A stretch of DNA of 64,000 bases, taken from positions 434,001-498,000 of the forward strand of contig NW_026782138.1 of the NCBI RefSeq assembly GCF_031769215.1. Direction: 5' to 3'. Shown in pieces: positions 19,250 to 40,049 of this stretch; within the stretch, counting starts at the first letter, position 1, and the number at the start of each line of letters is the position of its first letter. The translations under genes were made by a program, and so were the position numbers. Below the pieces are notes generated by a model. It was not told the origin of the DNA. It was given only the letters and a program-made list of their open reading frames with translations, and made no database searches. This DNA comes from Ylistrum balloti (lineage: Eukaryota).

Positions 19250-21480
19250 GTCAGTAGATACAGGTGTAATGTAACTTGTCAGTAGATACAGGTGTAATGT
19301 AACTTGTCAGTAGATACAGGTGTAATGTAACTTGTCAGTAGATACAGGTGTAATGTAACTTGTCTGTAGATACAGGTGTAATGTAACTTGTCAGTAGATA
19401 CAGGTGTAATGTAACTTGTCTGTAGATACAGGTGTAATGTAACTTGTCTGTAGATACAGGTGTAATGTAACTTGTCAGTAGATACAGGTGTAATGTAACT
19501 TGTCAGTAGATACAGGTGTAATGTAACTTGTCAGTAGATACAAGTGTAATGTAACTTGTCAGTAGATACAGGTGTAATGTAACTAGTTAGTAGATACAGG
19601 TGTAATGTAACTTGTCAGTAGATACAGGTGTAATGTAACTTGTCAGTAGATACAGGTGTAATGTAACTTGTCAGTAGATACAGGTGCAATGTAACTTGTC
19701 AGTAGATACATGTGTAATGTAACTTGTCAGTAGATACAAATGTAATGTAACTTGTCTGTAGATATAGGTGTAATGTAACTTGTCTGTAAATACAGGTGTA
19801 ATGTGACTTGTCAGTAGATAAGGTGTAATGTAACTTGTCAGTAGATACAGGTGTAATGTAACTTGTCAGTAGATACATGTGTAATGTAACTTGTCAGTAG
19901 ATACAGGTGTAATGTAACTTGTCAGTAGATACAGGTGTAATGTAACTTGTCTGTAGATACAGGTGTAATGTAACTTGTTAGTAGATACAGGTGTAATGTA
20001 ACTTGTCAGTAGATACAGGTGTATTGCAACTTGTCTTTAGATACAGGTGTAATGTAACTTGTCAGTAGATACATGTGTAATGTAGCCTGTCAGTTGATAC
20101 AGGTGTAATGTAACTTGTCAGTAGATACAGGTATATGTAACTCGTCAGTAGATACAGGTGTAATGTAACTTGTTTTTAGATACAGGTGTAATGTAGCCTG
20201 TCAGTAGATACAGGTGTATTGTAACTTGTCTGTAGATACAGGTGTAATGTAACTTGTCAGTAGATACAGGTGTAATGTAACTTGTCAGTAGATACATGTG
20301 TAATGTAGCCTGTCAGTAGATACAGGTGTAATATAACTCGTCAGTAGATACAGGTGTAATGTAACTTGTCAGTAGATACAGGTGTATTGTAACTTGTCTA
20401 TAGATACAGGTGTAATGTAACTTGCCAGTAGATACAGGTGTAATGTAACTTGTCTGTAGGTACAGGTGTAATGTAACTTGTCAGTAGATACATGTGTAAT
20501 GTAGCCTGTCAGTAGATACAGGTGTAATGTAACTCGTCAGTAAATACAGGTGTAATGTAACTTGTTTTTAGATACAGGTGTAATATACCCTGTTAGTAGA
20601 TACAGGTGTAATGTAACTTGTCTATAGATACAGGTGTAATGTAGCTTGTCAGTAGATACAGGTGTAATGTAACTCGTCAGTAGATACAGGTGTAATGTAA
20701 CTTGTTTTTAGATACAGGTGTAATGTAGCCTTTATACAGGTGTAATGTAACTTGTCAGTAGATACAGGTGTAATGTAGCCTGTCAGTAGATACAGGTGTA
20801 ATGTAACTTGTCTTTAGATACAGGTGTAATGTAGCCTATTACTAGATACAGGTGTAATGTAACTTGTCAGTAGATACAGGTGTATTGTAACTTGTCTGTA
20901 ATACAGGTGTAATGTAACTTGCCAGTAGATACAGGTGTAATGTAACTTGTCTGTAGATACAGGTGTAATGTAACTTGTCAGTAGATACATGTGTAATGTA
21001 GCCTGTCAGTAGATACAGGTGTAATGTAACTCGTCAGTAAATACAGGTGTAATGTAACTTGTTTTTAGATACAGGTGTAATATAGCCTGTTAGTAGATAC
21101 AGGTGTAATGTAACTTGTCTATAGATACAGGTGTAATGTAGCCTGTCAGTAGATACAGGTGTAATGTAACTTGTCAATAGATACAGGTGTAATGTAACTT
21201 GTTAGTAGATACAAGTGTCATAGAACTTGTCTTTAGATACAGGTGTAATGTAACTTGTCAGTAGATACAGGTGTAATTTAGCCTGTCAGTAGATACAGGT
21301 GTAATGTAGCACGTCTGTAGAAACAGGTGTAATGTAACTTGTCTGTAGATACAGGTGTAATGCAACTTGTCAGTAGATACAGGTGTAATTTAGCCTGTCA
21401 GTAGATACAGGTGTAATGTAGCACGTCTGTAGAAACAGGTGTAATGTAACTTGTTAGTAGATACAAGTTTGTTGTAACTT
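19250..21480. repeat. 28-bp minisatellite (about 80 units), GTCAGTAGATACAGGTGTAATGTAACTT
   Basis: Directly visible tandem units. Confidence 0.97.
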
Positions 21481-21714
21481 ATTGACAGAAACGTTATATA
21501 AACCCTCTGTAGATACAGGTGTATTCTGACTCAACTCGTCTTTGTCTGCAGATACAGATGTTACGTCACTCGACTGTAAACAAAGGTGTGTTGTAACTCG
21601 CCTATATACAGAGGTGTACCGAAACTCATCTGTAAATAAGAGTGTACTATGACTCGGTTGTAGATACAGATGTACTTTTCCTCGTCAATCGATACAGGGT
21701 ATGTATCGTGACTC

Positions 21715-22735
21715 ATCTGTAGATACAGGTGAATCGTGACTCGTCTGTAGATACAGGGTGAATCGTGACTCGTCTGTAGTTACAGGGTAAATCGTGACTC
21801 GTCTGTAGATACAGGGTGAATCGTGACTCGTTTGTAGATACAGGGTGAATCGTGACTCGTCTGTAGATACAGGGTGAATTGTTACTCGTCTGTAGATACA
21901 GAGTGAATCGTGACTCGTCTGTTGATACAGGGTGAATTGTGACTCGTCTGTAGATACAGGGTGAATCGTGACTCGTTTGTAGATACAGGGTGAATTGTGA
22001 CTCGTCTGTAGATACAGGGTGAATTGTGACTCGTTTGTAGATACAGAGTGAATCGTGACTCGTCTGTTGATACAGGGTGAATCGTGACTCGTTTGTAGAT
22101 ACAGGGTGAATTGTGACTCGTCTGTAGATACAGGGTGAATCGTGACTCGTTTGTAGATACAGGGTGAATTGTGACTCGTCTGTAGATACAGGGTGAATCG
22201 TGACTCGTTTGTAGATACAGGGTGAATTGTGACTCGTCTGTAGATACAGGGTGAATCGTGACTCGTCTGTAGATACAGAGTGAATCGTGACTCGTCTGTT
22301 GATACAGGGTGAATCGTGACTCGTTTGTAGATACAGGGTGAATTGTGACTCGTCTGTAGATACAGGGTGAATCGTGACTCGTTTGTAGATACAGGGTGAA
22401 TTGTGACTCGTCTGTAGATACAGGGTGAATCGTGACTCGTTTGTAGATACAGGGTGAATTGTGACTCGTTTGTAGATACAGGGTGAATCGTGACTCGTCT
22501 GTTGATACAGGGTGAATCGTGACTCGTCTGTAGATACAGAGTGAATCGTGACTCGTCTGTTGATACAGGGTGAATCGTGACTCGTTTGTAGATACAGGGT
22601 GAATTGTGACTCGTCTGTAGATACAGGGTGAATCGTGACTCGTTTGTAGATACAGGGTGAATTGTGACTCGTCTGTAGATACAGGGTGAATCGCGACTCG
22701 TTTGTAGATACAGGGTGAATTGTGACTAGTCTGTA
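21715..22735. repeat. 29-bp minisatellite (about 35 units), GTCTGTAGATACAGGGTGAATCGTGACTC
   Basis: Directly visible; joined to the 28-bp array by degenerate intermediate units at 21480-21715. Confidence 0.97.
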
Positions 22736-25100
22736 GAAAAAAGTGTACTGTAACTAATCAGTGTATACAGGAATATTGTAAATTCTTGTTAATAGATACT
22801 GGTGCAATGAAAGGCCAATAGTAGAGATGTGATCTTTGTGTACAGAAATACAAGTACACTGTAACTGGTCTTTTTATACACCTGGCTGTCCACGCGGTGA
22901 TCCATCCACTAACAAAATCACCATATATACCTCATTTTCTATATTCCTGTGTCTTGTGATCTCCGCTGGATAAGAGAAACTTCATGTTTAACTGCATGGG
23001 CTTGAGACTGGGGATAAACGCTGTTAGACGTAAGGAATTAGTGCTTTATATGGTGTTAATAGACATGTTGTCATATACTTCACTGTAATGACAATGTGCA
23101 AAATCTGGGTTTTAATTTTTCGGTTGTATCAATGTACACCACAACAGTTACAATATACTTGTGTTAAGGGTCAGTTCCGACATTAATGAAAGTTTTCATT
23201 AAAAAAAGTTTCACAGCAAATTATGCTGTAATTACCTAGAGTAATACTTTACATCAAGGAAAGAAATCATAACAACATAATCTTCATTTTTTTATTATTA
23301 AAATCAATGATACAAATTAATCCTCATTCAAAGACTTGAATGAAAAAAATTAGTGTTTTGTTGTAGAAAAAAGCATGATATATACATGTATATGTACATG
23401 ATGTAAATAACATGATATCTATAAAAAGTTAAGATTTATAATGACTAGCCCTACACTGATCAACCCCATTATTGTCATTATCAATTGAAGGATAACAAAA
23501 TTCTATCTCTCAAAATCAAGACAAAAATTTACCAGTTTTTTTTTTTTTTGCAGCAAAATTAATTCCAAAACAATTGTAAAAATATATGGTACAGTAAAAC
23601 TTGTATCCCAACAAAAAGTAAAAAAAAAGTTGACGGGACAAAAAAATGGCTTATTAGAAAAAAAAACTTTTCATTCAATAAATTATTTATTATAAATGTA
23701 CTATGATTTCCGGGTAATTTCAAGGTAGATAACTCTAGAAGTAGTAATGGGCTATCACAATTTAGACTGCATGTAGACACGACTCCACAACACACTTTCT
23801 CAGCACTCTTATGATGATTTGTTATTTTCAGTAATAAACATTTATCACATACTCACTATATCAATACAATTTTAGTATGTAATATATCCCTCCCTCCTCA
23901 ACAGAAACCTTTCAGAACAATCTGTAGTCTATTTCTTCTCAAACTCATTCACATGACAGGACCATACCAGAGTAAATAAGACACTGATTAAATTTATTAA
24001 CGCTCCTATATCCACGTTTTAAGTTCTATGTAAATTATGCCCACTGAATGCCTAATCCTGATATTTACAGCAAAGCTTCCCCATGATGCAATGTAAAGCA
24101 GTGATACCAAAATGAGAATGTCTTTATTTTTAACTACAGAGCAATATGTAATCTCATATTCAATACATGTTCCAATAGTGTTGTTACTGATGGTATCAAC
24201 TCTGTAAAATTATGAATATATTTAAGTGTCACATGTTCTTAATATCGCTGAACGAACTGGTATAAGAAAAGGTATCAACACGCCAAGAGCTTTATCTTTT
24301 AAAAGAAAAAGTTTTAATTCCTAATTCTTAAATCCATAAATTTATATACAAAAAAACATCTCTTTTTCATTCTAATTATTTCCCCCCGTGATATTCTATC
24401 TGATAATAATCTTCCCATTAATTCTTAATCTTGAATTGTGAGAATAGATAATCTTGATATTTCCTCTCTGAAACTGTCCTATTTCAAATAAAATATCTAA
24501 TGATGAAATGATAAATGAACGATGGAGTTATTGCTTTGAGCTATGATTTTACAAAAATATATACATACATTTTACCTATTTACAATATATACAACTTTTT
24601 ACAATTGGATTAGACATATTGCAATCAAGATACAAAATATCACATTTGCATAGAAAATTTGTATCCTAGTTTAAAATATACTCGATACATGTACCATTCT
24701 CTCACATGCATGCACACACACTCTCTTCTTTTAACATCCACTATGATTTAGGATTAAGTGTTGACAGAATGCATGTTTTGTACACAAAAAGTTCTCTTAT
24801 GAATTTGTATAATTTGCATTTCCATCCTTACATTTAACAAGCTTTCAGTTATTTGTGTAACATCAAACTTCTGATATATTTTGAAAGTATTTCTAAAAGA
24901 TAGTTTGGATTTTGGTAATCATTTAAAAAGAGAACTCTACATGAAAAGAAAAAGCACTTCTGATGAAAATACCATAAAGATACATATTTCAGTGTAAAGA
25001 AGATCTGTTTTCAGTATGGCACTTTTACATGGACTCATTTTGTAGTGCTGTAGAAATGTTCCTGAATTGAAAGAAGCCTGTAGTATTGTCGAATCAGCAT

Positions 25101-28100
25101 CTACCGTCGCTTTAGGAAGAAGAAGGCGAGTACAGATCCTGTAACTAAGGCCCAGTTGGCAACAATGGAAGCAGCACCAGCTATACGACACTTCAGAGTC
25201 CCGAACCTAAAATACAGAAACAATGATTTATAATGGCCATGATCCTGTTAAGTTTGAGAACGATACACTGCATTCAAGAATAATTGTTGACTTTGAATGG
25301 TTTTATGCTGAATATCATCACAAGTGTGACAGAATGTCAATTTTTAAAACAAATGGCAGGTGCTTTCATCTGTTCATACGCTACAGTATGATTATCTACT
25401 GAAATACAATACATGTTTAAGCGAGGGGAAAAAATGGTATCTTCTAGTACAAAATTTGAAGTTGTTCAATTAACCACAGCATAATTTTAAAATCACCCTA
25501 TTATTCATACAAAGCTTCTGAAATCATACCAAATAGGTAGAGACTTACTGGTATGTAATGGCCTACACACTAACAACACTAAGTATAACATGACCCTAAT
25601 CAACCTTGACACAAAAATATTTACTTCCCAGATATTCTAAAGGAGAACAATATATCTCACTGTGAAAGTTCTACATTGATGGCATTATAATCATTACATC
25701 AATTACAGCCATTTATATATTTTTATCACAACTTCCATGTTTTAGCATTTCTACCCCCCAAAATAATTACCTGTTCGGTTTTCCTGCCAATTTCTTTGAA
25801 TACTCTTCCTCCATAGTTTGACCATCATAGAACCAGGCAAGGTCATTAAATGGATATTCGTATCCTTGACGACATTCACATTTGTAGGAACCAGTTTGGA
25901 ATCTTTTCCCAGGAAGGGGAATACACTACAATGATTTTTGCGAAAAAGAATATATTATACATTTCAAATTCTAAAAATATACAATTCATCCAAATTGCAC
26001 ACAAAATTTTACATTTTTTTGTTTTCCTCTGGACTTTTTATCACAATGAATAGGCATTTTTAAAAATGAATCAGAATATTCACAGCCAAATCCACCAAAC
26101 AAGCCTTTGTTAAAAAAAAAAAAAAAACAAGAAACATTAAAACAAACCAACAACAAACCTTTCAATGCTTATTCAATCTCAATGAAAGTTTATGTTCAAA
26201 ACACTTTTTTGTCCCAAGTATGAAAACACCTCCACCTCAAAAGCTTAGTGATGAGCGCTCCGGCATTCATCTTTGCCACCAGAGAATACTCACAAGCAAT
26301 GTAAGGTGAGTATTCCGCCAGTGCCAAGGACGACTGACCAGAAATCTGTTTCAGATGACATCCTGACAAGACTCCATCGACTTGTAAATGAATGCCTTTA
26401 TACCACGATGAATAAGTATGTCCCAGTTCAAAGTTAACCCAATACCAAACCATTATCATCACTGAAACCAGCAAGCTTTGTGATTCTCTACTTCACACCA
26501 AGACAAAAAAACATATCCGAGTTAAAAGTTAACCCGAGATCAGACCACTTTAATCACTGAAACCAGTAAGGTATGCAGTACTAAATGTATGACTGAATTT
26601 AAGTCAATGACAACTGCCTTCAAGGAAACCAAGAGACATTGACCATGTATGTTCATTTGTTTCCTCCTGCCAATCAGATCCTTTCACCAGATCAAGACAC
26701 TCTTTCACCAACAAATCACAGCAAAATGATACTTGATATCAAACAATCCTTTTCAGGGTAAACAGCTATATATAGCATTCAATATTATAAACCAACAGGC
26801 TGGAAGGTGTGGACAAGCATCAGATAAACACAAAAATCTAACCACACTGAAATTTATAACCACACTTAAACTTACAAATCAAGACATTCCATGATAAAGC
26901 ATAAGAAATAATGAAACACAAATAAAAATTATGAAAAGGATATGTTGTCCATATCAGAGAGAATGATTTTCTTTTTGTTTTATATTTTACTTACGTAAGT
27001 TGATTTGAAGTCGCACTTGGCTGTATTTTTGAAAGCGTTGGCTACATAGAAGTCCTGTGGACACTGATTTATGTCTAGATAATCCAACTTGACATCAACT
27101 TTAACTACTCCTCTGCAAAATTAAATTTACAATTAGTATTTTTTACAGTATATGATTTATTAAAAAGTCACTTATTTATTTTATTATATCCCATCTATCT
27201 GTAGAGAGTCTATCCATTTACACTGGACCTCTAACAAATCCTTCAAAGTTTTCTTTCGTACATAAGATATGAAATGTGCTACATAAGAACTAACATTCCC
27301 TTGACATTCATTCTACTCGACACCCATCTTAAGTGCGATTTTACAAAATTCTACAATGAAAAGCAGTACACGAGTTGAAAGTTTTTTTACCATTATTAGC
27401 AAAGATTTACTTTTGATTATTTGAAATTGTCTGACATGATTTGCTCATCAAATATTCAATAAATTCAAAGATATTGTAACAATGCTTTTTTCATTAACAT
27501 CAAAAGTTATTTCATTTTGACAATTCAAATTCTTACTTGAATTCAAGCATGGTTTTCAATTCATTAAATCCAAAGAAAGGAACCACGTAAGTAACCACCC
27601 AGTCCATGATGCGGTCATCACACTTGAACTCAGGCCTCAGCCATTCACCATGTTCATACTTTGGAGCATAGTACTGGATGGGATAGTACTCAAATCTGAC
27701 CAGACTAGTACCATTCACATCTGACCTCACCATGGGTTTGGCTGTGTACTTGACAAGACTATGGAAATTGGTCTGCCATCTTGCCTTTACAGTTCTGTAC
27801 CAGACCTCGTCTGTGTAGAAGTTAGAGTATCCAGCAGAGTCTACAGCAAAAAACTCATCTAAACCATCACCAGTCTTGGTTTGCTTCCTCCATGAGTATG
27901 GGCCAAAGAACTCTCTCACTATTCCATTGTTGTATCGTGGATCAGTATTATTTATTGGTGGAGACATGCGGAATTTGTAGCGCTCAAAGAAAACACCACT
28001 GCCAAGGATTCTGAAGTCTGCCATGACATTGGCAAGAACTTCTCCAAACAAATGTGTTTCATTCAGACGTCGGTCACCAGTCATACTACCAAAATTCTCG

Positions 28101-31100
28101 TACTCATCGACATTCTGCAAGAAGTCCGACAGGAAGTGTGCTAAACGAACTGCTGTACGTCCTTGTGCCTCAAATTGTTTCTCAACACCATAGGCAACAT
28201 CTCCTGGGAGGAAAAGTTCATGTGGCATTTTGGTTTTACAGTTTGCAGCATTAGTTTGAGCTTTTCTTAACAAAATCTTGTCCATTTTAACTCTCTTTTC
28301 CGCATCAAACAGATCCCGTTTATTCCTAATTTTTTTACTTTGTCCATCATATCTCGGAACATGTCGACGATTTCTGAGTTTTTCTTTCATCTTATCCTTT
28401 GGAACAGATCTTCTGGCTACTAATTTTGCTCTAGGACTCTGACCCGATGTAATGATCTTAAATAAGGTGGATTTCTTAGTTATTAGTGTTGATCTCTTTC
28501 TTCTCCTTTGCACAAATGTGGGCATTTCATTCGGAATCACCTGAAGCTCTGTAATTAAGACAAAATGGTCCTTTTAGTGTGTAACTCTCTCTGAATATTG
28601 TCATTATTAGTTGTAACAGATGAATTTAGAAACTTAAAATATTAACACAGAATGAAACTCAAAATTGTACCTTTTCGAATGTAGAAGCAGTTTCATCATA
28701 TCATTGTAATCTGCATCACAAAGTCAGATAAAAAATGTCTTCCAACAAGAATGTCCTTACCAATTCAATTATTTACATTTTATTATAAACACTAATTGGT
28801 AACCTCCCAAGGACAGACATGGTAACTGCTTATCACTATGTACCCCCAGAGCATGACAGGGATTAACATTAAAAGGAATTTGTAATCGGACTATGTTAAC
28901 TATAAAGATCTTTATAAGATTCTTAAATTTCTTCACTAATTTTTGTATTTAAGACAAAAAAATCACAACCATTCCAGTTATAACAAGTTGACAGTATCAA
29001 TGCTATTTCTTATTAAAACTAAACAGCAATATTTTTTTACCTTCCACAGGTAGGCAATCAAAGTTATTCATGTATTCATCTTCTGTCGCGATCTCAATCT
29101 CGTCTCCCAGGAAAGGCCCACCATGCCACCAGGGAAAGTAGTAGCCAGGTCGACACACACACTGGTAGCCACCCCGTCGGAATCCATAACCATTCAACGG
29201 CTCACACTGAAATAGAAAATGGTTGTTTTGATATACAAGTAAAAATGTGGCATACAATGATAAAATTGTACTTGTCACAACTGAAACATTACAACATAAC
29301 ATTAGTGTTAAGTTTTTCCAATTTAAATGTCTTTTTTTAAACATTCTTAAACAGTGAACGAATACATTAAATACCTAATCTATCTTCTTGGCTTGAAACA
29401 AGTCTTGTAATAATTTATAATATGTACTGGTTAGAAATATGTTTAATCATGTCTGTTTCTAAACTTTCAGTGAAAAATCAGGATTATGTACATGAGTAGA
29501 CTGATTTTTTTAAAATCTAAATTGATTACCTCTCTCTTGATCTGCCCAGATATAGCAAGATATATATGGATGTCATGTGACCATATATAGGAATTCAGAT
29601 AATATCTTTAGTGAAATTACAAAATATAGCAATGTAGTACTGCAACATATTTTATGTAAAAGGAACTGAGGATGAAGCGATGGAAATTGCTCTACATGCC
29701 TTGACCAGCAACTTCTTGATCCAAGAGTGTTCTACCTATACCAGGGTTCTGTAAATTTTGTGTCAACATATTGCATGTTCAATGTTAACTTATTTATTCA
29801 TGGAACAATTCAGAACACTTGATCGGACAAAAACATACTGATGAGTCATGTTTAATTCGGTCTCACGATGTTAATGTTATTTCATCATACATAGCTAGCA
29901 TGTTATTTTCCACAATATAACTGTACTCCTGAGTATTTTTACTAGCCTTACACAAGATTGCATATTAAGGAAGTGTCAGGATGAAGCAAATTCCATTTCT
30001 TAAAAGACGGGAATCATAAACAGCCACACCCTTGTTCCGGATATAAACGCATGTTTTAAAGACTTGTCGTTGGATAATAGTATTTACAAATTAAATACAC
30101 GTATCTTTATTCGCCAGCAAATCGTCATTATGTGTCACTTTATGTTAATACACAAGATTTAGAAATATGTAATGCCTAACATTGTACTAGAGAAACCAGT
30201 GCTCACGGTGAACATCCTGTTCTTCCTCTCATCTCAAGCCTCTGCCAATATAGGCTTGTCGAAGAGTTTACACGCACTGTCGGTATAATTTAGCATTAGC
30301 AAACAAAAGAAACATCTAAATTTTGGTCTTAAAACGATTCAAGGCAATGTTTCATGACAACACACGTTTTCCACGATGTTCATCTCACCTTCTGTCCAAA
30401 CTATATGACCACGCTGCATTTGGCGGGTGTTCAGCGTCGTCACGAATAATATGATCGTGGTCACCTAAACGTTTACTCAGCTAGGCACTTCTATTGGGGC
30501 CCAAAACAGGGGAATCATGCGGATTGTCTCTATCATATCCCTTTCATACACCATTACCTTTTTATCCCACTTAAACTAATAGGGTACTGATGCGGTTTAC
30601 TAGACAATTTAAATTCACAATTTAAGTTGTCGCTATTCATATTTCACTCACATCTTAACTTGCATTTGATCAAATCAATATTGGTTCATTCAGATAAATG
30701 CAAAGCTAATATTGATGCGTCAAAGTATAGTAAAACAAGTACGACATTAATTCTGTCAAAGGACATAGGACACGGTTATATCATGATTTTTTTTTCTAGA
30801 ACACAAATAAAACGTTTCATAGAATTGTTTAGAAAGGAAAGCGAGTGCTCATAAATGAAATCAAGAATAAAAATTTCTAGTAAATTGTTAAAACTGAGAC
30901 TGTCAGACCCATACAAGAATTAGGCGCAAATATGTCTCGCTTCGTTGGTTAGATTATTATTTTTCTGCGAAAAATGTAAAACAAACAAAAATTCATAAAA
31001 CCCACCTGCAAAATAAATGTCCCTCAGTCTAATCAATAACCAAAGATATGCTGTTGTCATGATTCAATCATTATATATCAATTTTTTTTCTAATATAAAT

Positions 31101-34100
31101 TCTTCAATTATCAAAATTCACCATATTTACCCCAAAAATACCTCTCTTGCCAAGGAGAGAAAGGAAAGCCTGTCTGATGATATTTCATATTACTTGTTAC
31201 AATATGAATATAAACTAAATCTAATATAGAATAAAAAGGAAGCTAGAAAGATTTTGCTATTTCTCATATCCTTATCTTTTTTTTATGAATAAATATATCA
31301 ACTAATATAATTTACTTGACAAGTTCAGATGTATTATTGAAGTTTACACGTCTATTCTACAATGTCACTATGTTTACTTAATAAGAAACTGAGTTAAACT
31401 CAAAATCAAAATCCTAGCATTCCTAATTTTCAGAGTCGTTGGACCGTGAAGTAACGTATTTTATTATAAGGGATGAGTTTGTTGAGGTGCCCACTCAAAT
31501 CTAACAAAAAAAAAACCGGATCTAAACCCAAAACGTTAAAGTGAAATACTGACAAAGACGCCCGAGATGAAACGCATTAGTCTCGCTTCCACGTCTTTTT
31601 TCGCGGGCGAGACAAGAATCAATATTAACGTAACATGCGCACATAGCTGAAAACATTCAAAATCCGGTACAGGTGAGATATTTCGACACAGAAACTGTCT
31701 CACAATTAATTTTCCTTATGGTTTTCAGACACACTTAAAATATTGTTCCATAACATTCACACCAGGCGCCGACATCTTTATCAGTATAATAAAACCAACA
31801 CACACATTTTAAAAGTTCTGGATACGCTAGTAGCAGGGAGCTGTATTTCGATCGTAACGCCACAACTTCATTCCGTTACTGAGAATATGGACACGAGCAG
31901 CGATGCATCAAGTGCATATACGGGTAAAGAAAAATGAACCATAATCCGATGACTTTTGCTTGGACGTGACAACTCACCAGTTAATAAAAGATCCATCTCA
32001 CGTGATACATTGTATCATAAGGAAATGAATCTCCATACCACCACCGCCCAAAACGTACATTTCTGTAGCGAATACCTGTTCTGTGTTGACAGAACGTGCC
32101 CGTCAGGCCGACCAAGCAGCATGATATTGATATATAAATTAAACCCTAATGGTGTTGGTAATGGTCAACCGCGGTTGTTACGCATACGTAGTTGCCATGG
32201 CAATAACAATTTTCCTCCATACATTTAGATAAACACACCGATATGATATCGAAGAATGATGGTGGTTTCCATAATGACTTTCTATAAACACAATCCTAAA
32301 CACAATATATACTGTTACTGCAACAGTTCATGTCTTTGTTGACCCACTGTATCACAAAGGTACACGCGTTCATCAGGAATTAATTCCGGATAATCCTAAT
32401 ATTTGTAGAAGTTGTGTGTACTGTTACGTCTGATATTAACTTGTAATGAAGCCGTTGGGCACCGCTGTATTTATTAGTTTTCGCTTTGTCTTCAGTTCAT
32501 TAATTATAGATTTGTGACTATACGACGATAATTTACGGTCTATTCTGGTTGGACAATGCCTTGCCTGCCACGCACGGCCGTGGTGCGACCAGTCGAACAC
32601 TTGGTCGATAATACAGTGGTCTCTCATTCATCATAAACCCCGAGGTCGTCTGCCATACTGTATCGGCACGGAATAGGTTGTTGATAGTAATCAACATAGC
32701 CCATAAACCTCATGCAACACTATGGCAACCAACATACCTCGGCAACACGCTAACACCAGTCCATGTCCTGATTGACATACATATATTAATGATGAAATCT
32801 CGAATGGTTATTGGACGCTTTTTTTCGTATATCCACTATATCATAAGTTGAAAAGGTAGCCCAGTATATATGATCTAATTTTCAAATTTCAAATTAAGAT
32901 TATTAGATCTGGCGAAACCAACTCATCCTTGTGTGCGTGGGGGACATCATCAAGATGGTGGCGACGAAGCAAAGTGTAAAGCACCGTCATCGGAAGAAGT
33001 TATTATCTTTATTTCCTCCAAATATGAAGATTTGCAAAGACAACTATATAAACAGTAATAAATTACATAAATTTACACGCGTAAAAATATCACAATGGAC
33101 GCCATACCTTTACGATGTTATACATTTATAATCAGTTTGTGTCTTTCGGTAAAGGAGCTGTTTCTATGCAAATTCAAAATATTGAGTGTCCCCTCCGTTG
33201 AATATTCAACATGTACATGACTCGGTACAATTTCATCATTAATCTTCATATAATTATAACACACGTTATTTGGAATTTTAGTTATGTCAGTCGCCCTATT
33301 TGTCGTCGTGAACAATAAGTTTATATACTTGCCTATCTTTGTTAATCAAACTCGATACTAACAGTGTAACGATTCCGATGTTAAGATAAATGCATTCGAT
33401 GACAGTACTCAGCTGTTTTTTTCTTACACGACGTCATATTGATATGTCCCATTCGGACAATTTACACGACAGAGTTATTGAGCAAAGCACTACAAAGTTA
33501 TATAAATAACATTCATATCTCACAGAGTTACTTCCCTTCGTTTCAACCCATCAACTGTTATGGCGATATCAATAAGTTCGACAGCTTTGTATCGATAATG
33601 TTATACGATATGATGAAGTCCAACCAATGACAATATTGACCAAGTTGAAACACAGGGGCATGTTACAATGATTCTGGGAGCGTGGACTTGTGTAGAATAT
33701 CTAGGGGAGTATTATTGTACATGCTCCTTTGCCGAATGCAGGGATGTCGATACATAACGTAACGCACTTCTTGTATTGTATGTGTCAATTCAATGGACAA
33801 TTTCAGTCCATACGTTAATATGTCATTGAGCCGCCAGAGACCGCATGTCTCCGGTACGTTAGCGTGTTATTGGTTAGAGAACAACTAATCCGCAGGGTGA
33901 TTTTATGCAATCATACTAAAGTAACGTAGATCAAATAATTGATTATGACTGCATAGCAATTAAGGCAGTAAAATACAACAGGATTTTTAAAAATAAACAA
34001 TGCGGTTCCCACTTACCTGAAAACCGACAAAAATGAAAAACACCCGCCGGAAGCAAGTTATTCAACCGATGATGTTATGGAGATATAATTTAACATTAAC

Positions 34101-37100
34101 TGGCAGAGCTTTCCTACTTATTTTGTGGATTTTTTTAATGGTGGTCCCTATATTGCATTTCCTGATTGTCTCAACATACACAAGTATTTTTCACCGTTGT
34201 CCAAACAGGTCTACGTTGTCAGCTGTCCTAGTTAGCCATACGATCTACGATCTTAAGATTTTCCTCTACATGTCCTTTTGGAATAGTTGTTTTAAAAACT
34301 GTTAATCGAACAGGTAAAATACTCTATGAATTTCCCAAACCTACACAATATAAACTTTCTCTTTTTCGTCATTTTATCGATTCCTAAATATCAAGTATCT
34401 TACTTCAGTTTGTTGGTTTTATTTGACTCGTAACGAACATGTGTAAGACTTCATGAATTTACCGATTCCTATATATAAGTAGTTTAACTCTGTTCACGTT
34501 TACTAAACTCATAACGTACCACATTTCATTCATCTCTTGTAGCTTCCAATTTAGTTACTTTCAAGATTACTGACGCCGTCAAACGACATCATATTTCACA
34601 AGTAATTTTACCGATACCACACTTAAGTATCAAGTACTTAAGTATTTAAGCCCAAGTACTCTATCTGTAGTAACTTACAAAAACCATTTCTTAATGTAAA
34701 ACCATCCATATTTAAAGTGTTTGCTATTGGATAACAACAACGTTGTGGCCGTGAGTATGTACAAGCCATAAAAAAACTAGACAGAGACTTCATTGTACCT
34801 GCTGTCTACATTGCGTGATCGTAAGAGGCGGTTAATCTTGGAATCTTTAAAGTATACTTTCCTATTTCTAATGACATTTTCCTTTTTAATCTCTCTCATG
34901 ACACTATTTCACATTTGCCCTTTCTCATGAATGTCCGTCCTGGTGAATAAGGCTATGCGTTATCCTCCCAAGCCGTGACATGCCAAAACGAAAATGGTAC
35001 TTCGCACTTTTTGCTTGAAGATCACCTTTGAGCGGTTACATATCACAAAACCAATACTGATATATATGAAAAACGAATACAGCTCGTTGATAGCGTGAAA
35101 ACTAGTATACATGTAGTGTCACCATTAAAAAAGTGTATGATGGTGACATTGTTGTAATGTTTTTTGCCAAAATAGATCATGTACTCGTTGTACCTCAGGT
35201 GATATAGAGGACGAATTTCACTTTATCCTAAAATGTCCTTTTTACCAAAATCTGAGACGTAAATAAATCAAACAATTCTGTTACAGAAGTCCAAATGTTT
35301 TTAAGTTTACGATATTACTGAGCACCAATAATGTAAAAGAATTATGTAATTTTGGGAAATATTTATATCAGGCCTCAAGGAAACGCATAGAATTTAGTGA
35401 TTGATAGAGCTAATTGTACACTACAGTATCATTGTAAGCTTACTCTCCATTTAACCTAATTTGTATAACATTCTTTCATATTTGTACCACATTATGTAAT
35501 TATGTCTATATTATTTAACCTATGAGTCGGATGGCTCACGGAAAAATAAAATGATTGAATGAATGAGCTAGTACAATCAGAAGTTTAATTGGATTTGTGA
35601 CGTCCTAGTAATACAATAGGAATAATGTCATGTGACCAAAAATGAACGGGAACAGTAGTCATACAATTGGTCTCGACTCTAACATAGTGCAGTAAACTTT
35701 TGTTCGTAAACATAACTAATGGAATGAAATATTGCTGACAAATGTGTTGGAGTGCACGTGGTGGAAATGTTTAGCCAAGGTAGTCGCTATATTATTTAAC
35801 ATATACTGTTTCCCCCTGCAAGGGGATATTATGCATGCACATGCTCCCTTCTCTGTCGTCAAAGGTGGTACTATAATGAGGGACAAGGAATGCTTACCAT
35901 GGTGGTAGGTTTACACCTAGCGGTATCTTTGAAGTAGTTAGGGTCGGGATTTCCTTCACTCTTGGGGCAGGGGTTGAAGTCGATCCTCTCAAACTCTATA
36001 TCCTGGGTCACCACCGCCACAAACCTGCAAGACAAGGTGTCAGAATAATGTATACCACAACATTTATGTTTATAAAACGACATTGCCTTACAAAAATAAG
36101 TGTCAGGACAAAACTTCGGAGGGTAACAGGCAGATATTAACTAGTACTTCAGTAATAAATGCGGGGCTTAGATATAAGTTTGTTTTTCGGTTTGTACTTA
36201 TGACTTTACTCTTGGATCAGAACTTTGATTTAGAGAAAATATCTCAAATAAAATTGGACAAATTTTGACGAATTCTGACAAAAAAATCAGTAGATATGGA
36301 ATCTTTACACGTGTTTGAAGTAGATATCTGATACTAGTAAATTTACCTAGGTCTTCGGAGATGGGTCCAGTTGGAGTATCTAGGCATATATTCGACTACT
36401 GGTGAATGAGCGCTGACGATCCACCTGTTGGATCGGCCACAGTCGAAGTACGGCATGGTCCATTCGACCGGGAGGGACACATCTCTGTCTGATTGTCCGG
36501 GTTGGGGAGGCCCGAAAAAATCGATTCCCTCGAACTCCTTATGAGTAAATTGTTTTGTGGCGTTGGAAAACTTCACGTTCACAAAATAGGTAAACTTCCG
36601 GAGAGAGTCTTGACTCTTGTCGTTATCCGGGAGCCATGCAGAGTACCATGGGGCGGCTTTGTAAGCATCACTTGTGTAATTTTTCATCGTTCCAGCTCCA
36701 TAGTCATGAATGTCCACAGTATTGTTAGTAGGCTCTCGTAACCAATTCGTCGGTTCATTATAATCATCCGTTCTCCACGCGCGAGGTCCAAACAGGGGAA
36801 GTGTTTTGTTGAATTCCACGCCATTGTAGAGGTACCATTGAGGGTAATTACAATGATTGTCAAAGTACATAGCAGAACCGTTTATAAACCCTTGACTTCC
36901 AGTTACATCGGCGGTGGCGGCCATATAGAGATACTGAAGACCTGGCTGGTTCATAAAATCCTCTGATCTGTTCTGTCTTTGGTATATGAAACTGTAGAAA
37001 AAGGCTCGATTGAGAGCCATGTTGTGCAGGTGTAGTAGTTGGGATCTATTTGAATATATTACGGTACTCAGTAACATATTGTACCGTGGTAACTGTGAAA

Positions 37101-37302
37101 CAGTTTCCATGGGAAGCCGGAGCTTCTCTTTGGGTTTAGACCTACAGTTATCGGCAGTAACAGAGGACATTCTGTCCATAATTTCATCGAATCGGTCCTC
37201 TGCCAACCAGTGGAAAACGCCCGATTGTGAGACACTTCCGCACCATGACGCGTAAAGAGTCAGAGTTAGTCCAACGAATATGATATGCATATACAAACCC
37301 AT
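25101..37302 (-). CDS. Uncharacterised 879-aa protein with two GPR158/GPR179-like extracellular (Cache + EGF-like) modules and a C-terminal anchor, no 7TM. Exons: 37302-36347, 36024-35898, 29206-29041, 28548-27537, 27112-26995, 25925-25771, 25206-25101
   Basis: Seven GT-AG exons total 2640 nt in one frame, with an N-terminal hydrophobic signal peptide. Motifs WTMPYFDC..WIVS, EFKGVVKVDVKLDYLDINQC, FKNTAKC..CIPLPGKRFQTGSYKCECRQGY and GYGFRRGGYQCVCRPGYYFP parallel the recalled GPR158 ectodomain (WSPPYLEC, EFRGVMKVDINLQKVDIDQC, FSGTHKC..CMPIKGLGFVLGAYECICKAGF). The protein ends ..GAASIVANWALVTGSVLAFFFLKRR*. The gene structure is firmer than the family assignment. Confidence 0.92.
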
Positions 37303-39921: not shown

Positions 39922-40049
39922 NNNNNNNNNNNNNNNNNNNNNNNNNNNNNNNNNNNNNNNNNNNNNNNNNNNNNNNNNNNNNNNNNNNNNNNNNNNNNNN
40001 NNNNNNNNNNNNNNNNNNNNNNNNNNNNNNNNNNNNNNNNNNNNNNNNN
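39922..40049. other. Assembly gap (128 N)
   Basis: Run of n characters. Confidence 1.

Follow-up and report, generated by a model that had tools for sequence, protein, structure and literature searches.

The closest described relatives of the protein discussed here are the extracellular parts of GPR158, recently recognised to be a metabotropic receptor for glycine (mGlyR; PMC12834959), and GPR179. S172 has been named as a pocket residue of GPR158 and GPR179 shows no response to glycine (both PMC11437087), and no glycine-bound structure of mGlyR exists according to PMC12834959. In amino-acid-binding dCache1 domains, a Tyr and an Asp 27-34 residues further on hold the amino group of the ligand, and YxxxxRxW holds the carboxylate (the signature of Gumerov et al., cited in bioRxiv 10.1101/2022.12.05.519047); in alpha2delta-1, Y452 and D493 hold the amino group and Y238, R243 and W245 the carboxylate (bioRxiv 10.1101/2022.12.05.519047). 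Here, we analyse a 64,000-nucleotide stretch of DNA from Ylistrum balloti (the window, by which we mean the whole stretch), on the minus strand of which lies a gene for a protein with two GPR158-type Cache modules in tandem, termed module 1 and module 2 from the N terminus.

The sensor domain itself is of a known kind, and what is new is the asymmetry of its two pockets. Module 1 carries a Tyr-x-Asp dyad at the site that aligns with a conserved GPR158 motif, and in module 2 both residues have been replaced. The reading that we favour, with moderate confidence, is that module 1 holds an amine-bearing ligand, and that the mollusc module 2, having lost the dyad, serves as a non-sensing partner in a tethered Cache-Cache pseudo-dimer. 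No paper on GPR158-type proteins lacking the seven-transmembrane (7TM) domain was found in the literature searched, nor any functional description of the large family that they form; databases label such tandem proteins only as 'GPR158/179 extracellular domain-containing protein', and one Atlas cluster has about 1,000 members, mostly from arthropods.

Two modules and their motifs

The two motifs and the codons of their key residues lie as follows.

36439..36462, minus strand: module 1 motif W281-T-M-P-Y285-F-D287-C288 (WTMPYFDC), by translation
36459-36457, 36450-36448 and 36444-36442, minus strand: codons of T282, Y285 and D287 in module 1
27620..27643, minus strand: module 2 motif W719-L-R721-P-E723-F-K725-C726 (WLRPEFKC), by translation
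27640-27638, 27631-27629 and 27625-27623, minus strand: codons of L720, E723 and K725 in module 2

Both octapeptides had been read from the DNA in an initial annotation, at 36462-36439 and 27643-27620, and minus-strand translation finds them there, each close to the end of a long open exon. Compared with module 1, module 2 has Glu for Tyr, Lys for the acidic residue and an extra Arg at motif position 3. Both motifs align with K264-WSPPYLEC-272 of human GPR158, in which S266, Y269 and E271 occupy motif positions 2, 5 and 7; their counterparts are T282, Y285 and D287 in module 1 and L720, E723 and K725 in module 2. The human numbering and the equivalence of the motifs, as given in the initial annotation, are confirmed by the alignments to GPR158 265-272, in which EWLRPEFKC and QWTAPYFDC are set on the human motif. 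Its statement that these three human residues are needed for glycine binding is unconfirmed, as no statement on S266, Y269 or E271 in glycine binding was found in the literature searched. The second acidic residue of interest is human D307 (in GVMKVDINL), with which D327 of module 1 and D760 of module 2 align; this Asp is kept in both modules and also in the paralogues described below. Human GPR179 reads LSPPFLEC at the motif, with S and E kept.

The register comes from queries that span a whole module, which alone reach GPR158 in the PDB: the module-2 orthologue P0002 matches 7she_A over 261-361 (E 9.5e-9), the module-1 orthologue P0095 matches human GPR158 (E 2.4e-7) and the joint profile A5 matches it at E 4.6e-20. 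With phmmer, neither exon 1 nor exon 4 (the exons that hold the two motifs) gave a match to the PDB when searched alone, and the exon-only profiles A1-A4 missed GPR158, their post-motif columns being dropped or absent and their N-terminal part too divergent. No significant alignment to human GPR158 was obtained before about residue 217, the region that includes S172 and R173, pocket residues of the first strand that follows helix alpha2, and the N-terminal two thirds of each module have no detectable sequence similarity to the human protein.

Module 1 (residues ~26-416) and module 2 (~505-845) each comprise a Cache part followed by an EGF-like part. BLASTP aligns them at 24% identity over 349 columns (E 1e-15) with the motifs in register and, judged by this alignment, the two are an ancient internal duplication of a GPR158-type ectodomain. 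Membership of the GPR158/GPR179 extracellular domain family follows from profile scores above the cut-off together with a Cache fold and then an EGF-like, Cys-rich part. Against a curated cut-off of 28.1 bits, the Pfam profile GPR158_179_EC (PF22572) scores 31.2 bits on exon 2 and 32.1 bits on exon 3, the latter with weak EGF matches as well, and it matches exon 5 in a search of the genome (C281:460980-461171). On orthologues, it reaches 92.5 bits for P0002, 149.6 bits for P0005 and 171.2 bits for P0145, where it matches two stretches; P0145 is one continuous 950-residue open reading frame (ORF) from a metagenomic data set and carries both modules. Besides GPR158_179_EC, the Pfam scan of the full-length P0145 returned only MCP-like_PDC_1 and weak EGF matches, with no VWA domain. 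MCP-like_PDC_1, a bacterial profile, covers the motif region of module 2 where Tyr and Asp are kept (42.3 bits); it has no match over the motif region in P0002, where they are replaced, and in P0005 its match begins only after the motif.

The fold assignment agrees with these profiles. AlphaFold models were taken from orthologues: for module 2, residues 140-500 of P0002, which is 66-71% identical and has the same motif (mean predicted local distance difference test score (pLDDT) 75, most of the Cache part exceeding 90), and for module 1, residues 20-412 of P0145 (pLDDT 67). With Foldseek, both models match GPR179, GPR158 and bacterial double-Cache sensors. With VIA-align, the module 2 model scores Z 13.6 against a histidine-kinase sensor, Z 12.5 against GPR179 (214 residues, root-mean-square deviation 4.7), Z 11.3 against GPR158 and about Z 10 against amino-acid-bound Tlp3 (Z 10.4), PctC, Mlp24 and CtaA. 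The EGF-like part has six conserved Cys in each module. A disulfide between the modules through an eighth Cys was considered and rejected, as the eight conserved Cys per module account for one Cache and three EGF disulfides.

Conservation and history of the replaced residues

The search for homologues yielded 73 proteins for module 1 (exon 1) and 53 for exon 4 (module 2). Across the module-1 set, which spans molluscs, a flatworm and a spider, the motif reads [WFIY]-[TS]-x-P-Y-[FY]-D-C with T/S, Y and D essentially invariant and fixed in about 65 homologues, so that the retention of T/Y/D noticed in the initial annotation extends across phyla. The module-2 homologues of Solemya, Dreissena, Pinctada, Physella, Batillaria and Gigantopelta read W-[LTS]-R-P-x-F-[KR]-C, hereafter the K/R type; the Arg at position 3 is nearly fixed, and the old Tyr site is taken by E, Q, T, H, R, I, M, V or K. 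The genome of Y. balloti itself has three paralogous tandem genes, all of which keep the tandem order.

C281 (the window gene): WTMPYFDC in module 1, WLRPEFKC in module 2
C561:87128-104584: FTDPYFDC in module 1, WTRPTFKC in module 2; both modules on one strand, module 1 upstream
C987:92558-96429: FTRPYFDC in module 1, WIGPTFRC in module 2; both modules on one strand, module 1 upstream

The last two correspond to loci L013, L014, L016 and L017. The change to L/E/K in module 2, first read from a single gene, is thus part of a feature fixed across the lineage, with K/R in the bivalve and gastropod orthologues and in all three paralogues, and with one change on the tree.

Other lineages differ. 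In a clade with the full-length P0145 and contigs L001 and L020, module 2 has the same tandem architecture and keeps WS[AP]PYFDC, that is, the Y-F-D type of motif. Contigs L018 and L019 have WSRPYFDC in module 2, and their module 1 groups with a spider protein (support 100*), by which they would represent an arthropod-like lineage. Since Y-F-D is kept in module 2 of these lineages, the swap is a derived state that does not extend to the family as a whole. Retention of Y/D by module-2 orthologues had been named in the initial annotation as a finding that would count against its reading; it holds for the distant lineages and not for the mollusc orthologues, which carry K/R.

On the tree, a branch with support of 89/55 (not starred) separates K/R-type module 2 (44 rows) from the rest. 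A single change accounts for the acidic site and four for the Tyr site, and Y-F-R still occurs in some members; a single Asp-to-Lys/Arg change followed by repeated loss of a Tyr that had become dispensable is the simplest history. Clade A has K/R at 86%, and most of clade B has K or R. P0001, the nearest relative of the window module 2, reads WLRPHFMC with Met at the Lys site, and P0014 reads WSRPTFLC with Leu, from which it appears that the basic residue is not absolutely required.

About 30 columns are conserved and identical between module 1 and Y-F-D-type module 2, and among these only the motif Tyr and Asp differ in the K/R type. By this measure, the fold of the mollusc module 2 is kept and its Tyr/Asp dyad removed. 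Clade A has gained further conserved residues relative to the Y-F-D type, among them Y607, Y714, R577 and F569. Module 2 is 48-66% identical across molluscs, a degree of conservation that argues that it is under selection.

Gene structure, linker and C-terminal tail

The window is AT-rich and eukaryotic in composition. The gene model joins open frames at canonical AG/GT sites into seven minus-strand exons, giving a coding sequence of 2640 nt in frame for 879 residues and a TAG stop.

36347..37302, minus strand: exon 1, residues 1-318 plus 2 nt; signal peptide, then N-terminal helices and strands of Cache module 1; ATG start, open frame, WTMPYFDC...LRRPR at its end, donor AG/GTAAAT
35898..36024, minus strand: exon 2, residues 319-361; last Cache strand of module 1, with D327 (36002-36000), the counterpart of human D307, and the beginning of the Cys-rich part
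29041..29206, minus strand: exon 3, residues 362-416; EGF-like part of module 1 (CEPLNGYGFRRGGYQCVCRPGYYFP...FDC)
27537..28548, minus strand: exon 4, residues 417-753; basic linker followed by the helices and strands at the N terminus of Cache module 2, with WLRPEFKC...MLEFK at its end
26995..27112, minus strand: exon 5, residues 754-793; last Cache strand of module 2 (GVVKVDVKLDYLDINQC), with D760 (27096-27094) kept
25771..25925, minus strand: exon 6, residues 794-844; EGF-like part of module 2 (CIPLPGKRFQTGSYKCECRQGYEYPF...), aligned to GPR158 through P0002
25101..25206, minus strand: exon 7, residues 845-879 and TAG stop; LKCRIAGAAS, hydrophobic tail (IVANWALVTGSVLAFFFL), KRR

The model is colinear with P0145, to which its first half is 56% and its second half 47% identical. 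In gene models of the molluscs Solemya, Physella and Pinctada, module 2 is linked to the end of module 1, as it is in P0005, P0016, P0129 and P0136.

Ahead of module 2, the basic linker has R-x-K/R-R sites at residues 432-435, 475-478 and 491-494 (window 28316-28507), and a polybasic stretch occurs at the matching place in both paralogues (KKKKRRKRS and SRRRRS) and in orthologues. This pattern suggests conserved cleavage between the modules by a proprotein convertase. At the C terminus, CRIAGA[AS] is conserved and is followed by a poorly conserved hydrophobic tail with which the protein ends in all orthologues seen, including P0002, P0005, P0016, P0129 and P0145. No 7TM domain follows the ectodomain: the TAG comes after the single hydrophobic tail, and the orthologues stop at the same place. 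From its sequence, the tail looks like a glycosylphosphatidylinositol (GPI) signal or a single-pass membrane tether, and more like the former than like a signalling transmembrane helix.

Architecture also varies among relatives. In an orthologue with Y-F-D in module 2 (L020:5400-8250 and L021:3400-7950), the EGF-like unit after module 1, which matches residues 362-379 of the window protein, is tandemly repeated between the modules; one contig has about seven copies and the other about 20. The Y. balloti genome also has a separate GPR158-like gene at C95:54193-57366 (L002), in which the EGF-like part is followed by a stalk rich in Cys and by a first transmembrane helix; this gene is probably the canonical 7TM-type orthologue, and further PF22572 matches lie at C236 and C442. 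Just downstream of the window gene, a satellite array at 19300-22750 has short units (for example, VTIHPVSTDESRFTLYLQTSH and YITPVSTDKLHYTCIY) and several minus-strand frames open for up to 346 residues; a run of 128 N occupies 39922-40049.

Proposed roles of the two modules and comparison with known systems

Module 1 keeps a Thr/Ser-x-x-Tyr-x-Asp strand under near-absolute constraint and, about 40 residues further along, a second Asp; together these would make up the part of the Cache signature, Y[x]D, that serves the amino group. In the mechanism that we favour, module 1 would bind an amine-bearing small ligand through Y285, D287 and D327. On the simplest history, a single replacement of Asp by Lys or Arg altered module 2 in an ancestor of bivalves and gastropods, after which its Tyr, no longer held, drifted; the fold core, the second Asp and all other shared conserved positions were retained. 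The mollusc module 2 would then be unable to hold an alpha-amino group in the canonical way and would act mainly as a non-sensing partner, possibly with K725 paired to the retained D760. The polybasic linker would be cut and the tail would serve as a GPI signal.

How far module 1 can be called an intact pocket, as in the initial annotation, depends on the half of the signature considered. The amino-group half may be counted as kept, in that module 1 has the Tyr and the later Asp. The spacing of Y285 and D327 is 41, compared with 37 in human GPR158 and 40 in alpha2delta-1, and falls outside the bacterial 27-34; module 2 has Glu at the signature Tyr site and keeps D760. The carboxylate half does not stand, as YxxxxRxW is absent from both modules.

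The pairing of the modules draws on complex prediction. Module 1 and module 2 of P0145 scored 0.80 together, against 0.00 for the best control; this mark is reached by 51 of 78 solved complexes and by 2 of 108 mismatched pairs. The runs share at least 71% of contacts, with a partner pLDDT of at least 79. In the prediction, the long helices of the two modules make most of the interface, neither W-motif lying within it, and the Cache dimer of mGlyR is formed by these helices (PMC12834959). The prediction suggests that the modules pair as a GPR158-like pseudo-dimer, and we take it as support rather than proof.

Several points weigh against a sensing module 1 with a silent partner. A regular-expression search for YxxxxRxW gave no match in the window protein, none among the 73 module-1 homologues and four among 76 proteins of the module-2 set. 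That Y285/D287 and E723/K725 would line a cavity is a deduction from homology. GPR179 keeps S and E of the motif yet is unresponsive to glycine, so retention of the motif is no proof of amino-acid sensing. The K/R and the extra Arg of module 2 are themselves conserved, which is as compatible with a new function as with a loss. The complex score may stem from the model's memory of solved GPR158 and GPR179 homodimers, and the prediction used an orthologue of the Y-F-D type, not the window protein. Finally, searches for RNA runs of this species returned a single run, apparently of DNA, and the exon joins of the gene model are supported by homology, not by transcripts.

Among the alternatives, the one that survives best, doubtful as we consider it, is that the module 2 pocket has been re-specified into a basic one for an anionic or acidic ligand with a carboxylate, sulfate or phosphate group. 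The conserved K/R of clade A and the position-3 Arg of the K/R type would suit such a pocket, as would the further residues gained in clade A and the level of identity of module 2 across molluscs. However, the site of the former Tyr, on the same strand as the Lys and two residues away, is hypervariable, which is unexpected for a specific ligand contact, and the Lys site itself is Met in P0001 and Leu in P0014. The retained second Asp would work against binding of an anion and might pair with the Lys instead, and clustering of the gained residues near the pocket is not supported by the evidence. An acidic ligand for module 2, the possibility raised in the initial annotation, is speculation.

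It is less probable, and in our view unlikely, that neither module senses a small molecule and that the W-x-x-P-x-F-x-C strand is structural, for example with its Cys in a disulfide, or contacts protein partners in an adhesion or scaffold role. The missing carboxylate signature and the N-terminal two thirds without detectable similarity to human GPR158 are compatible with this view, as is GPR179, which has a similar motif, is unresponsive to glycine and binds the matrix protein pikachurin (PMC11437087; PDB 8d1b title). Yet Y and D of module 1 are fixed from one phylum to another, which, with a second Asp at a signature-like spacing, is the pattern of an amine-binding Cache domain; a purely structural role would not pick out the dyad, and Y and D alone were lost among the shared conserved positions. 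The motifs also lie outside the predicted interface between the modules.

That module 2 is a decaying, functionless duplicate, or that the modules are two separate genes, as they are split in some public gene models (for example, Dreissena DPMN_046424 and DPMN_046425), is hardly credible given a frame open through all seven exons with canonical splice sites, the single ORF of P0145, the joined modules of P0005, P0016, P0129 and P0136, the conservation of module 2 across molluscs and the tandem order in all three paralogues.

We return to an amine-binding module 1 paired with a non-sensing module 2. In a more elaborate form, which we regard as rather improbable, the protein would be a one-chain counterpart of an asymmetric class C ectodomain dimer, furin-processed and GPI-anchored, in which Lys and Asp of module 2 form a built-in pseudo-ligand that locks the module and sets the gain of module 1. 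If the module 2 pocket were self-occupied in this way, the family would amount to an experiment of nature in which half of a Cache dimer has been disabled.

A single chain here provides a natural comparison, with the dyad frozen across phyla in one copy and replaced in the other copy in molluscs. The pattern points to the Tyr-x-Asp dyad as a functional core of this Cache subtype and suggests that the tandem proteins work as paired modules with divided roles. Modules 1 and 2 are ready-made natural mutants for ligand screens. The weight of the finding is moderate because it concerns a side branch of the family.

Of the known systems, the GPR158 and GPR179 ectodomains are most alike, sharing the Cache plus EGF-like module, with WSPPYLEC and D307 aligning with module 1 and a fold similarity of Z 11-12.5; the predicted module pairing uses the helices of the receptor's Cache dimer (PMC12834959). 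The window protein differs in having neither the 7TM domain nor the RGS7-binding tail but a short hydrophobic tail at its end, in having two modules per chain with a polybasic linker, and in the L/E/K of module 2 compared with S/Y/E in GPR158. Bacterial dCache_1 chemoreceptors (PctA, Tlp3, Mlp24 and CtaA) share the fold in their membrane-distal Cache domain (Z 9-10.4) and may share the amino-group motif with module 1, in which a Tyr is followed at about 40 residues by an Asp; Tlp3 presumably has a Y167-x-D169 dyad that resembles Y-F-D. In contrast to them, the window modules lack YxxxxRxW, consist of a single Cache followed by EGF rather than a double Cache, and have a spacing of 41 rather than 27-34.

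The alpha2delta proteins and CACHD1 are likewise animal extracellular Cache proteins without 7TM domains. Alpha2delta is proteolytically processed and GPI-anchored, to which the polybasic linker and GPI-like tail of the window protein, with their putative processing and anchor, look analogous. The window family differs in lacking a VWA domain (by the Pfam scan of P0145) and in its Cache subtype, and the sequence similarity is marginal (E 0.37). Alpha2delta binds amino acids or gabapentin through Y452 and D493, at a spacing of 40 (bioRxiv 10.1101/2022.12.05.519047).

The likeness to GABA-B is one of analogy. This receptor is an asymmetric class C dimer in which one subunit binds the ligand and the other does not, and in both systems homologous sensor modules would be paired with the ligand-binding residues present in only one of them. 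GABA-B uses Venus-flytrap domains on two 7TM chains, whereas the window protein has two Cache modules on one chain without a 7TM domain.

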